A stretch of 64,000 bases of DNA, from positions 66,880 through 130,879 of the forward strand of contig JAAOMT010000647.1 of the NCBI GenBank assembly GCA_016748015.1, given 5' to 3'. The notes beneath the pieces were generated by a model. The model saw nothing but the letters and a program-made list of their open reading frames with translations, did not search any database and was not told the origin of the DNA. Of the stretch, positions 17,096 through 19,572 are shown in pieces; the stretch's first letter is position 1, and every line of letters begins with the position of its first letter. Both the position numbers and the translations under genes were made by a program. The DNA comes from Geosiphon pyriformis uo1 (lineage: Eukaryota > Fungi > Glomeromycota).

Positions 17096-19572
17096 TTAAT
17101 CCAAATTTTCGGTCAATGGGATATTCTCCTTCTGACACATTTCCAACGCTTTTGGTTGACCTTTCAAAGCAGCCAAGATCAAATATCGTTTCCCTTTTTT
17201 TTCATCTTTCATGACATTGTATCCTTGATAATATATGTAGCCAATATTATACATGGCAGTGATGTTATTGTAAGCTGCCAATTCGAAATACTTGATGGCA
17301 CTTTCAATGTCCTGTGGCACTCCCTGACCGTTCCACAAACAATAACCATAGCGAAATTGAGCTCCAGTAATTTTTCCTCTATCTGCCGCTTCCTTAAAAT
17401 ATTTTGCGGCTTTCTCCATTCGATCCTTTTTTTCTTGAGGAGGATTTTGGGAGATATTATCGTGGTAGAGGCAATATCCAACCCAGTATTTAGCAAGCAG
17501 ATTTCCAAAATTTGCATGTTTTTCGAAAGCTTTGAAGGCATCAATCTTATTGCCATCTTTATATTCTTTTATTGCATCTTCGACAGGCATAACAGTAGAG
17601 AGCTCGGCAAAATCCAATTCAATCCCAAGGTCATCATCGTTACCAGGATCGGGAATGTTTGGATTTAAAGTAAACGAAGTTATTGAAACATTAGATGTAT
17701 GCATAATTCCAGGACGAGGCGAGACTTGTGGCTTGAATAATTTGAGAAGTTTATGTAGAGCCGTGAACATTTCTGTGAGCGAGGGTCGCATCTTGGGGTC
17801 ATGCCTCGTAGCTATTTATAATGGAACAAATGCATGGAATCAGTTAGACCTTGTAAAGGATATTTTATGAAAATCAAACCTTTTTTATTCACCTTCCCAA
17901 GATATTTTTTGCCAATCTGGGGGAACATTTAGGCTGAATGGAAGTGAGTGAGCTTTAAGGACTTGCTCATAAATCTCACGTATATCTCCTTTTTCTCCGT
18001 ATGGAATCTGTTCTTGGGCAATCTCCCATAGCAGTATGCCAAAACTAAGAAAAGAATTAGACTAAAGCATTAATTTTGGATTTTAAATCTAACAAATATT
18101 TGGTGTATATACCTAAAGATTTCACATTTGGTTGTGTATAGACTTTGGTTATTCTCTAAATTTTCAGGGGCCAAATATCTAACGGTTTCCAAGGTTTGTT
18201 TTATTACTAAAGTGACATCATGAATATTACGACTAGTGGAGAATGATTACACAAACAAAAATATTTAGCTTTTCCAATGGTGGTTTTTTAATGATAAATG
18301 GGGTAATAATACTATACCTTAGAGTAAAATTGGCAATTTTAGCTGCATGATATTGATCTATTAGAATGTTTTGACTTCGAATGTCGTGATGCAAAATGGA
18401 AACTTCATGGAGGAAAGTTAAACCACGAACAATATCTGTCGCAATTTCACTTCGTTTAAGCCACTCGATGGGTCCATAGGTTTTGTAATATTCTGTCAAA
18501 GTACCAAATTCCGCCCATCCGGTGACCATTAAAAGAGCATTTTCATCTTCCGATACACCATAGAAATGTATGATATGTGGGCAATCCTTCAGTTTCTTTA
18601 AGATAGCCACCTGACTCATTATATTTTTTTTCTCGTCCTCTGCTTTATTACCAGAAAGTAGCCTAATTTTGACTGCCACTTCAATTTTCCCCATGTAATA
18701 TTTCTTTTGAACTTTGCCTTTGGTAATTTGTTCGGATGATTCTGGATCTGTCAATTTGTTTCGATCAATCCTGCCCAAATAGATGACACTTTCCGAAAGC
18801 TTCTCTTTTTGGTATGCTAGGTGCATGGCCAAAATTATATCTAATTTTTCGCTAATTTTTTGGTTACCATCTGCGATACCTCCTTCAATCTTTTTTAAGT
18901 ACTATTGGTTTCAAACGTGATTAATTATTAATGAGAAGAAATACGTTCTTAATCGATAAATTTTTTTTTAACTTACATCATTTAAATCTGCAAGGTCACT
19001 TTTAATCGACTTGTTATCTCGTTCCATTAGACTTTGGATTTGAAGCGTCGTTGCAAAATTAAGGACTTTCATCAAATCATCAAATTCTTGAGTCAAGCTT
19101 TTGTATTGCTCTTCAATATCATGTGCATTGAAAAATTTGCGCAGCCCTTTTCACAATCAGAATGAAAAAATTACCTTTGAAATTAGCTCGGAGAATCATG
19201 ATGATTAAACTATTATACAATGAAAATAGCATATATACCTTTAAGTTGTGATACTTGTTCAACAAAAATTTTAATATTACTTATAACTGTGATTAATTTT
19301 TGAAAATTCATATAATCTTTTTCTTTTAGAGACCCTATAATTTGAGTATCTTCTAAAGTATATTGAACTATATTTACACGCTCACTTAATAATCTACATA
19401 TTTTTTTATTATGTTCCGCGGTTCGATACAATTCGATGATACTGTGAACCAAATTCGTTATATCATTTATCAAAGGAATAAAAATTGCTGAGACATCTAT
19501 CACAGTTGCAATTCCTTGCAACACATTTAACACATCAGTTGTCGTACTATATAACACTTCTTGGTGTTCCAT
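17096..19572 (-). CDS. MLKL-like N-terminal four-helix bundle + (pseudo)kinase + C-terminal Sel1 repeats, 691 aa, intact
   Basis: Exons 19572-19239, 19146-18977, 18901-18318, 18232-18113, 18044-17893, 17811-17096 splice in frame with GT-AG ends (2076 nt). N-terminus FIPLINDITNLVHSIIELYRTAEHNKKICRLLSERV; kinase VAVK, HHDIRSQN, KIANFTLSR, YLAPE, FGILLWEI; Sel1 AQFRYGYCLWNGQGVPQDIESAIKYFELAA. Confidence 0.9.

Follow-up and report, generated by a model that had tools for sequence, protein, structure and literature searches.

The locus lies in a 64,000-nucleotide stretch of Geosiphon pyriformis DNA, referred to here as the window. On the minus strand, positions 17096 to 19572 are the exact span of a coding sequence, a predicted gene model of six exons encoding 691 amino acids. 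The sequence runs from an ATG at 19572 to a TAA at 17096-17098, and all introns are canonical GT-AG introns. The exon-by-exon translation is identical to a database protein (P0151), which NCBI lists as G9A89_004303, a hypothetical protein from Geosiphon pyriformis, and contains every motif quoted in a first-pass annotation of this DNA. Pfam searches of the protein detected a PK_Tyr_Ser-Thr domain (146 bits) and three Sel1 repeats (70 bits, cut-off 30.7), both far beyond chance. The coordinates of all features are collected in Table 1.

Table 1. Exons, predicted domains and motifs of the MLKL-like gene, in window positions (counts refer to family members or relatives carrying the residue).
Feature	Positions	Strand	Residues and remarks
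Exon 1	19239..19572	-	1-111 and first base of G112; start codon at 19572
Exon 2	18977..19146	-	112-168
Exon 3	18318..18901	-	169-362 and two bases of S363; second brace helix, N-lobe, catalytic loop, NFT
Exon 4	18113..18232	-	363-402 and two bases of S403; activation segment, APE, KCE
Exon 5	17893..18044	-	403-453 and first base of A454; C-lobe
Exon 6	17096..17811	-	454-691 and TAA; end of C-lobe, acidic linker, Sel1 repeats
N-terminal hydrophobic helix segment	19468..19524	-	17-35; no other 19-mer in the sequence is as hydrophobic (Kyte-Doolittle mean 2.03)
Four-helix bundle, MLKL_N type	19061..19494	-	27-140; contains intron 1
Two brace helices	18773..19048	-	145-173 and 187-211; contains intron 2
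Kinase-like domain (predicted pseudokinase)	17732..18730	-	226-480; contains introns 3-5
Degenerate Gly-rich loop	18692..18730	-	226-238, QITKGKVQKKYYM; single Gly; family consensus RGKVxKK
VAVK	18668..18679	-	243-246; Lys retained in 54/60 family members
Position of the alphaC Glu (Gln265)	18611..18613	-	Gln in 40/60, Glu in 9/60
Catalytic loop HHDIRSQN	18368..18391	-	339-346; Asp341 and Asn346 kept, Arg replaced by His
NFT in place of DFG	18323..18331	-	359-361; Asn in 120/135 relatives; aligns with GFE of MLKL
Activation segment	18163..18319	-	S363 to APE386; contains intron 3; S363, R364 and T370 conserved; pLDDT <50 at 366-370
Thr370, activation loop	18211..18213	-	Thr in 49/60, Ser in 5/60
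KCE, subdomain IX	18121..18129	-	398-400; Glu for Asp in 113/135 relatives; common to MLKL (KSEIYSFG)
Acidic linker	17537..17731	-	481-545; net charge -8; poorly conserved
Sel1 repeat tail	17099..17536	-	546-691; three Pfam Sel1 repeats (PF08238)

Glomeromycotina proteins annotated as 'kinase-like protein' (for example R. irregularis P0154 and Gigaspora P0155) are 44-67% identical to the Geosiphon protein over 95-99% of its length, and the family has a common Pfam set of PK_Tyr_Ser-Thr, MLKL_N and Sel1. The gene is the family's Geosiphon copy on contig C536, differing in that its MLKL_N match (PF22215, residues 37-149, E 1e-5, 23-25 bits) stays just below the 27-bit cut-off. Paralogues scored 31-61 bits, and P0001, P0016, P0022 and P0044 clear the cut-off. 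The exon structure matches that of intact paralogues, all six exons are open, and the nearly invariant residues of the family are all retained. When substitutions were counted from per-exon codon alignments and pooled, dN/dS against two intact paralogues was 0.40-0.42 at a dS of about 0.45; over exons 4 and 5 it was 0.7-0.76. With a dN/dS of 0.4, the Geosiphon copy is under purifying selection, and the constraint is moderate only. The genome also holds decayed copies of the family (L015, L016, and L017), with in-frame stops or missing exons. We rejected the possibility that the gene itself is a decaying pseudogene, since its frames are intact and its dN/dS is about 0.4.

The first-pass annotation had proposed a fungal counterpart of MLKL, in which a pseudokinase follows a four-helix bundle and brace helices. 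The AF2 model of residues 1-215 (pLDDT >90 over most of 30-170) consists of four helices, at 27-50, 56-80, 86-113, and 119-139, followed by two brace helices. A Foldseek search with the bundle model gave MLKL structures 6zvo and 2msv as the top matches (TM 0.73, target-normalised). In a VIA search of all PDB representatives, the MLKL N-terminal domain 6ux8 ranked first (Z 13.4), with 4btf at Z 11.9 and the plant MLKL AtMLKL3 at Z 10.6 (139 residues at 3.0 A), although a Z of about 13 can be reached by chance for helical bundles. The top six matches of an N-terminal family profile against PDB sequences were all MLKL, and every one of the nearest ESM Atlas clusters carries MLKL_N. The single exons were less informative: Pfam returned only noise for exons 1 and 2 taken singly, MLKL_N being visible with the whole protein or its paralogues, and phmmer of exon 1 against the PDB found nothing meaningful. 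The hydrophobic segment at residues 17-35 carries a nearly invariant F-x-P-L motif, and the most hydrophobic 19-mer sits at the N-terminal helix in the Geosiphon protein and in five homologues.

The resemblance to MLKL extends beyond the bundle. A family profile of residues 1-480, searched against the PDB, ranked full-length MLKL first (human 6lk5, E 1.1e-57; mouse 4btf, E 2.6e-56). Each of these alignments is collinear and forms a single block that spans profile positions 36 to 484-486 and includes the MLKL brace. Among the top matches of the same search, MLKL pseudokinase domains and B-Raf were level (E about 3e-48). Motifs idiosyncratic to MLKL, namely HxxIRSxN, xFxL, and K[SC]EIYSFG, are common to the family. 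Foldseek with the 1-480 model also placed 4btf at the top, with a different domain arrangement (rmsd 16 A over the full alignment). VIA with the 480-residue model gave a Z of about 28 for the kinase-like domain against MLKL, MerTK, BTK, and Eph kinases alike; the kinase fold governs this comparison, which is neutral on kinship with MLKL. The gene is an intact representative of a family found throughout Glomeromycotina, whose homology to MLKL, judged by sequence profile, spans the full length. With the structure predictions added, the protein is a true relative of animal MLKL, with a predicted bundle, a brace and a probably dead kinase, and the proposed counterpart is supported. The domain order, from bundle through two brace helices to the kinase-like domain, is that of MLKL (6lk5, 4btf; N-terminal domains 2msv, 6zvo, and 6ux8). 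The Geosiphon protein differs in its longer hydrophobic N-terminal helix and in the addition of an acidic linker and three C-terminal Sel1 repeats.

MLKL keeps the VAIK lysine, has lost the DFG and HRD motifs, and works as a conformational switch. Like MLKL, the Geosiphon domain lacks a Gly-rich loop, keeps the VAxK Lys, has lost the DFG Asp, and carries the subdomain IX Glu and an IRSxN catalytic loop. Residues 226-246 (QITKGKVQKKYYMGKIEVAVK) contain one Gly and no GxGxxG, and 0-1 Gly is found in this loop across the family. The missing GxGxxG, NFT for DFG, and the retained VAVK Lys, all pointed out previously, proved correct and are conserved across the family. The two proteins diverge at the DFG Asp position, which is Asn here and Gly in MLKL, and at the alphaC position, where MLKL retains Glu and the Geosiphon protein has Gln. 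The catalytic loop HHDIRSQN, which aligns with HGKIRSSN of human MLKL, had been listed as a pseudokinase mark. The Arg is indeed lost, but the catalytic Asp is kept, so that this is not an HRD loss of the MLKL type: HxD Asp and catalytic Asn are both present, whereas MLKL has HGK or HRN. Similarly, the Asp-to-Glu replacement in subdomain IX (KCEIFS, residues 398-403) is real and occurs in MLKL itself, but the change is conservative.

These degenerate marks range over Glomeromycotina, from Paraglomus and Ambispora through Rhizophagus and Gigaspora. All eight relatives that keep DFG also have the alphaC Glu and the subdomain IX Asp, indicating that the losses are coordinated. Compared with the residue set of a competent kinase, the Geosiphon protein has the Lys and the HxD Asp and lacks the Gly-rich loop, the alphaC Glu, and the DFG Asp. 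The kinase-like domain, of TKL type, is probably dead. In the family, Lys246, Asp341, Asn346, and APE each show conservation of about 90% or higher. Retention of the first three, which are the VAxK Lys, HxD Asp, and catalytic Asn, goes beyond the needs of a pure scaffold, and the domain may still bind nucleotide or catalyze in an atypical way. The activation segment begins with residues 363-379 (SRNIHDVTLVIKQTLET), in which the S363 codon is split by intron 3. Among the phosphosites suggested for this segment, S363 (53/60 family members) and T370 are conserved, while the remaining Thr residues are not. Activation by phosphorylation of the activation loop could occur at these two candidate sites, which lie in a loop modeled with low confidence.

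The C-terminal repeats had been interpreted as a built-in sensor. The tail is a short one of three repeats, and no other region of the protein is as well conserved (43-61% identity across genera). As recognition modules are usually variable, this conservation argues against a variable sensor, and we rejected a hypervariable sensor role for the tail. Within the window, the MLKL-like gene is flanked by Sel1-array kinases.

Two groups of known proteins invite comparison. Plant MLKLs, such as AtMLKL3 (6ka4), also combine bundle, brace, and pseudokinase outside animals, and carry a C-terminal extension past the kinase-like domain. In the Geosiphon protein, this extension consists of Sel1 repeats, unlike in plant MLKLs, and the likeness to them is structural. 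We know of no link to NLR signaling for the Geosiphon protein, unlike plant MLKLs, and of no RIPK3 or RHIM partner, unlike MLKL. [quoted passage not shown] This helix is key to membrane targeting in HET-S and inserts into membranes in HeLo domains (PMC12881547). Pfam HeLo, Helo_like_N, and SesA models gave no match to residues 1-215 at E up to 10. In the Pfam layout, the bundle is followed by the kinase-like domain, the linker, and Sel1, with no C-terminal amyloid or prion-forming region. HeLo and HELL proteins belong to Dikarya, whereas the present family belongs to Glomeromycotina.

Proteins of this kind are already in print (PMC8778642, PMC12881547), and the architecture has been noted in silico in related fungi. 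Among early-diverging fungi, MLKL-family homologues (TCDB 1.A.105) were reported in Glomeromycotina only, as Sel1-bearing proteins (PMC8778642); that treatment is one sentence, with no analysis of motif, structure or function. A 2025 review urges broader exploration of fungal 4HB proteins (PMC12881547).

MLKL-type executioners have been characterized experimentally in animals and plants, and the bundles studied in fungi are, to our knowledge, the isolated HeLo and HELL only. Drawing on the analogy to MLKL, its plant counterparts, and the HeLo proteins of fungi, we consider it reasonably probable that the gene encodes an intact MLKL homologue whose pseudokinase switch restrains the bundle until its release leads to membrane targeting and to regulated death or compartment sealing. 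The kinase-like domain would perform little or no phosphotransfer and would act as a conformational switch, restraining the bundle via the brace. An upstream signal, either phosphorylation at the conserved Ser363/Thr370 or a conserved partner bound to the Sel1 tail, would free the bundle, which would then oligomerize and reach membranes by means of the hydrophobic N-terminal helix. In coenocytic hyphae, this may result in cells dying in a regulated manner or in the sealing of compartments, for instance during defense or non-self reactions. Both the conformational switch and the membrane toxicity of the Geosiphon protein are what we infer from these analogies; the sole pointer to membrane action of the bundle, and an indirect one, is the hydrophobic 19-mer (KD 2.03), conserved in position at the N-terminal helix.

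Alternatively, the protein may be a non-lytic MLKL-like adaptor, with a bundle that tethers membranes, traffics, or scaffolds a signaling complex via the Sel1 tail without killing. The strong conservation of the tail would fit a fixed cellular partner, and standalone and tandem MLKL_N proteins in Glomeromycotina (P0002, P0005, P0009, and P0010) suggest a versatile module. Furthermore, one study of plant MLKLs describes immunity as separable from cell death (10.1101/681015). However, the strongly hydrophobic, positionally conserved N-terminal helix is similar to the one that HeLo domains insert into membranes (PMC12881547). We regard a purely adaptor role as fairly unlikely. All characterized relatives of the bundle are, as far as we know, able to permeabilize membranes, which also stands against it.

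An atypical active kinase, one that transfers phosphate despite lacking the DFG Asp and Gly-rich loop and uses the bundle as a regulatory or localization domain, appears improbable. The high conservation of Lys246, Asp341, Asn346, and APE would be in keeping with activity, as would the predicted fold, a regular bilobal kinase with Z 28-29 to active tyrosine kinases, and the occurrence in the same fungi of related MLKL_N proteins whose kinase motifs are all canonical (P0228, P0233, and P0238). However, about 90% of the clade has jointly lost the Mg-binding DFG Asp, the alphaC Glu, and the Gly-rich loop, whereas the DFG-keepers retain all, and Asn at the DFG Asp is a standard kinase-dead change in general kinase biochemistry. 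Finally, a redundant paralogue drifting to loss, a surplus copy in an expanded family without any separate function, would be compatible with the decayed copies, the elevated dN/dS of exons 4 and 5, and a search for sequencing runs that listed none of RNA, but is very improbable given the six open exons with canonical splice sites, the paralogue-like exon structure, the overall dN/dS, and the presence of all nearly invariant family residues.

The restrained, MLKL-like executioner remains our preferred reading. More speculatively, and in our estimation as a minority possibility, the family may represent the fungal offshoot of a single ancient MLKL lineage and not a convergent fusion, executing necroptosis-like death or compartment sealing in the coenocytic hyphae of arbuscular mycorrhizal fungi and Geosiphon, with the Sel1 tail docking upstream kinases such as those encoded by the flanking Sel1-array genes. 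The shared degenerate motifs and the collinear alignment of bundle, brace, and pseudokinase point toward a single lineage. The family matches MLKL end to end and keeps its degenerate motif set across all sampled Glomeromycotina orders. The N-terminal hydrophobic helix, Asn359, Ser363, Thr370, and the Sel1 tail offer handles on a possible necroptosis-like switch in these obligate symbionts, and the family would help decide whether the MLKL architecture is ancient.

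The MLKL-like gene lies in AT-rich, eukaryotic DNA of a 128 Mb assembly (792 contigs) and comprises six exons on the minus strand, from an ATG at 19572 to a TAA at 17096, separated by introns of 68-92 bases with canonical GT-AG borders. A word search with a paralogue retrieved P0151 (691 aa; NCBI "hypothetical protein G9A89_004303") from Geosiphon pyriformis, which belongs to the Glomeromycotina, order Archaeosporales. P0151 was identical to all six exon translations and was therefore used as the whole-protein reference, while the exons themselves were searched singly. Every string quoted in the first-pass annotation was found in the six-exon translation, and the observation of an MLKL-like gene with these motifs is confirmed. 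Pfam detected PK_Tyr_Ser-Thr (146 bits, residues 226-471) and three Sel1 repeats (70 bits) in P0151.

Coordinates of the MLKL-like gene, its motifs, decayed paralogues and neighboring features
Feature	Position	Strand	Sequence or remark
Exon 1	19572-19239	-	
Exon 2	19146-18977	-	
Exon 3	18901-18318	-	
Exon 4	18232-18113	-	
Exon 5	18044-17893	-	
Exon 6	17811-17096	-	
Gly-rich loop position	residues 226-238		QITKGKVQKKYYM; single Gly
Lys motif	residues 243-246		VAVK
Catalytic loop	residues 339-346		HHDIRSQN
DFG position	residues 359-361		NFT
APE	residues 384-386		APE
Subdomain IX	residues 398-403		KCEIFS
L015	G000:C642:74200-77900		decayed paralogue
L016	C642:131000-134700		decayed paralogue
L017	C788:72400-76200		decayed paralogue
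Pentatricopeptide-repeat gene	2870-6505	+	single 1211-aa open frame; PPR_2, 308 bits
Mobile-element remnants	7135-7701; 38666-39817	+	Tc3-type transposase HTH fragment, RNase H open frame
Sel1-array kinase gene	11395-14396	+	11 Sel1 repeats
Long simple repeat	19990-20212		Ile or Tyr runs in two frames
2-kb block	20001-22000		13.9% G+C
Sel1 gene	22594-24909	-	771-aa open frame; 18 repeats, 647 bits
Sel1-array kinase gene	30549-32685	+	at least 4 Sel1 repeats

Queried singly, the N-terminal exons gave no Pfam match and no PDB sequence match. Exon 1 was therefore used in an exhaustive search of representative proteins, which returned 168 proteins at E ≤ 0.001; the full-length matches carry MLKL_N (PF22215) above the cut-off, then a kinase domain, then Sel1. 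The Pfam MLKL_N scores of the relatives P0001, P0016, P0022, and P0044 were 35.7, 36.5, 30.9, and 61.4 bits. P0151 itself matched over residues 37-149 (E 1e-5 to 6e-5), at 23-25 bits slightly below the 27-bit cut-off. MLKL_N was present in all nearest ESM Atlas clusters. When the N-terminal 215 residues of 100 sequences were aligned (A3) and used as a profile, the top six PDB sequences were MLKL N-terminal domains and mouse MLKL, at a marginal E of 0.03.

AlphaFold with A3 gave a mean pLDDT of 79 and a pTM of 0.71, with most blocks at residues 30-170 above 90, and placed helices at residues 27-50, 56-80, 86-113, and 119-139, then at 145-174 and 185-210. The structural comparison proposed earlier for the N-terminus bore out the resemblance: the four-helix model of residues 1-215 found the human MLKL executioner domain as its best Foldseek match (for 2msv, target-normalized TM 0.73, rmsd 3.1 Å, 149 columns), followed by AtMLKL3 and mouse MLKL. 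An independent search of 48,161 PDB representatives (VIA) ranked the MLKL N-terminal domain 6ux8 first (Z 13.4, 137 residues, 3.1 Å), mouse MLKL third (Z 11.9), and AtMLKL3 fifth (Z 10.6); this result counts only alongside the other lines, as Z values of this size can arise by chance among helical bundles. The hydrophobicity of P0151 peaked at residues 17-35 (Kyte-Doolittle mean 2.03, 19-residue window), part of the N-terminal helix bearing a nearly invariant F-x-P-L motif, and in five homologues of other genera the peak had the same location.

A profile of residues 1-480 of P0151 and 59 family members (A4) was run against all PDB sequences, and its two best matches were full-length MLKL (6lk5, E 1.1e-57; mouse 4btf, E 2.6e-56). 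Each aligned in one piece, between profile positions 36 and 484-486; chain residues 5-469 and 10-463, respectively, were covered. The degenerate motifs of human MLKL lined up with those of the fungal family: HGKIRSSN with HHDIRSxN in the catalytic loop, AGFEL with ANFxL in the DFG region, KSEIYSFG with KCEIYSFG in subdomain IX, and VAIK with VAxK. When only the kinase-like part was considered, MLKL pseudokinase domains shared the top rank with B-Raf (E ~3e-48). The AlphaFold model of residues 1-480 was confident (pLDDT 86, pTM 0.83), with full-length mouse MLKL as its best Foldseek match (E 1.8e-15, 467 columns); the rmsd of 16 Å indicates that the predicted domain packing is unlike the crystal form. 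In a rigid-body search with this model, the kinase fold dominated, and MerTK, BTK, and Eph kinases all scored Z ~28; for the kinase-like domain, MLKL is therefore not distinguished by structure alone. The MLKL_N match, the bundle model, and the single-stretch full-length alignment support the earlier reading of P0151 as an MLKL counterpart.

Motifs were counted in 135 related kinase-like domains, and the Lys and αC positions in the better-aligned 60 sequences of A4. The DFG Asp position was Asn in 120 and Asp in eight of the 135, the Gly-rich loop segment held zero or one Gly in all, and the subdomain IX position was Glu in 113. The HxD Asp was retained in 127/135, the catalytic Asn in 129/135, and the VAxK Lys in 54/60; the αC position was Gln in 40/60 and Glu in 9/60. 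Two details of the first-pass annotation need adjusting: in HHDIRSQN only the Arg is replaced, the catalytic Asp being retained in HHD, and the subdomain IX Asp-to-Glu change is conservative and common to MLKL. Losses of catalytic residues go together in the fungal family: the eight DFG-keeping relatives all had the αC Glu as well as the subdomain IX Asp, and seven the HRD Arg, while only 15 of the 120 Asn-type sequences retained the αC Glu. The Asn-type signature occurred in named proteins of ten genera (Paraglomus, Ambispora, Geosiphon, Acaulospora, Gigaspora, Cetraspora, Entrophospora, Funneliformis, Glomus, and Rhizophagus) and is thus old and maintained; the two tabulated Diversispora proteins had Lys or Glu at this position. 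Judged from sequence, the pseudokinase marks are a trait of the whole family.

The intact paralogue closest to P0151 is P0001 (G9A89_010585, locus L014). In it, VAVK is replaced by VAVE, changing the ATP-anchoring Lys to Glu, and the αC position is Arg; these changes suggest that nucleotide binding is dispensable, at least in P0001. Within another set of relatives (P0002, P0003, P0005, P0009, P0044, and P0228), some join a fully canonical kinase domain (HRD, DFG, αC Glu) to an MLKL_N-like bundle and others carry two to four such bundles in tandem; in Glomeromycotina the bundle is thus a mobile module.

Of the candidate phosphosites proposed for the activation segment, two were conserved: Ser363 (53/60) and Thr370 (Thr in 49/60, Ser in 5/60). 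Arg364 was conserved as well (51/60), but the remaining Thr residues listed were not. Residues 366-370 had pLDDT below 50 in the 1-480 model. The residues of human MLKL that RIPK3 targets, both of them acidic in chain 6lk5, align with residues 367-368 of P0151, where members of the fungal family often have an acidic residue (Asp/Glu in 33/60 at 368). Since loop alignments are unreliable, this acidity is only a lead.

Exon 1 had at least 12 matches in its own genome, and MLKL_N six. The five paralogous loci retrieved shared the exon order of the P0151 gene: L013 and L014, both on contig C642, were intact, while L015, L016, and L017 had in-frame stops or missing exons. Decayed paralogues lie beside the two intact copies on C642. 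Against L013 and L014, the P0151 gene showed a dS of ~0.45 and an overall dN/dS of 0.40-0.42 (0.28-0.30 in exon 3; 0.70-0.76 in exons 4 and 5). The gene is under moderate purifying selection and is not decaying.

Two Sel1-array kinase genes flank the MLKL-like gene, both with the repeats upstream of the kinase C-lobe and with kinase parts near-identical at the start, each beginning MVLPFAEHGDLKAFLK. Unlike the gene between them, they keep both Asp residues (HGD, DLG), and so appear catalytically competent. The 771-aa frame is nearly all Sel1, the simple repeat lies just upstream of the MLKL-like gene, and the pentatricopeptide-repeat protein is probably a mitochondrial RNA-binding factor.

Identity to P0151 among 16 family members was 28-55% in the bundle, 22-60% in the brace, 41-76% in the kinase-like domain, 21-63% in the linker, and 43-71% in the Sel1 tail, the upper values coming from the closest Geosiphon paralogue. 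The tail was the best conserved region in most cross-genus comparisons, a pattern that is at odds with a diversified recognition module and speaks against the proposed built-in sensor. It agrees with either an intramolecular role or the binding of a fixed partner.

In 2022, a survey covering early-diverging fungi reported homologues of the MLKL family (TCDB 1.A.105) in Glomeromycotina only, carrying Sel1 repeats of unknown role (PMC8778642), and a 2025 review urges broader study of 4HB proteins in fungi (PMC12881547). Our literature search found no motif, structural or functional analyses of the Glomeromycotina MLKL-like family. A killing function for P0151 is something we only infer; its gene is a new, intact member of an already known MLKL-like fungal family.
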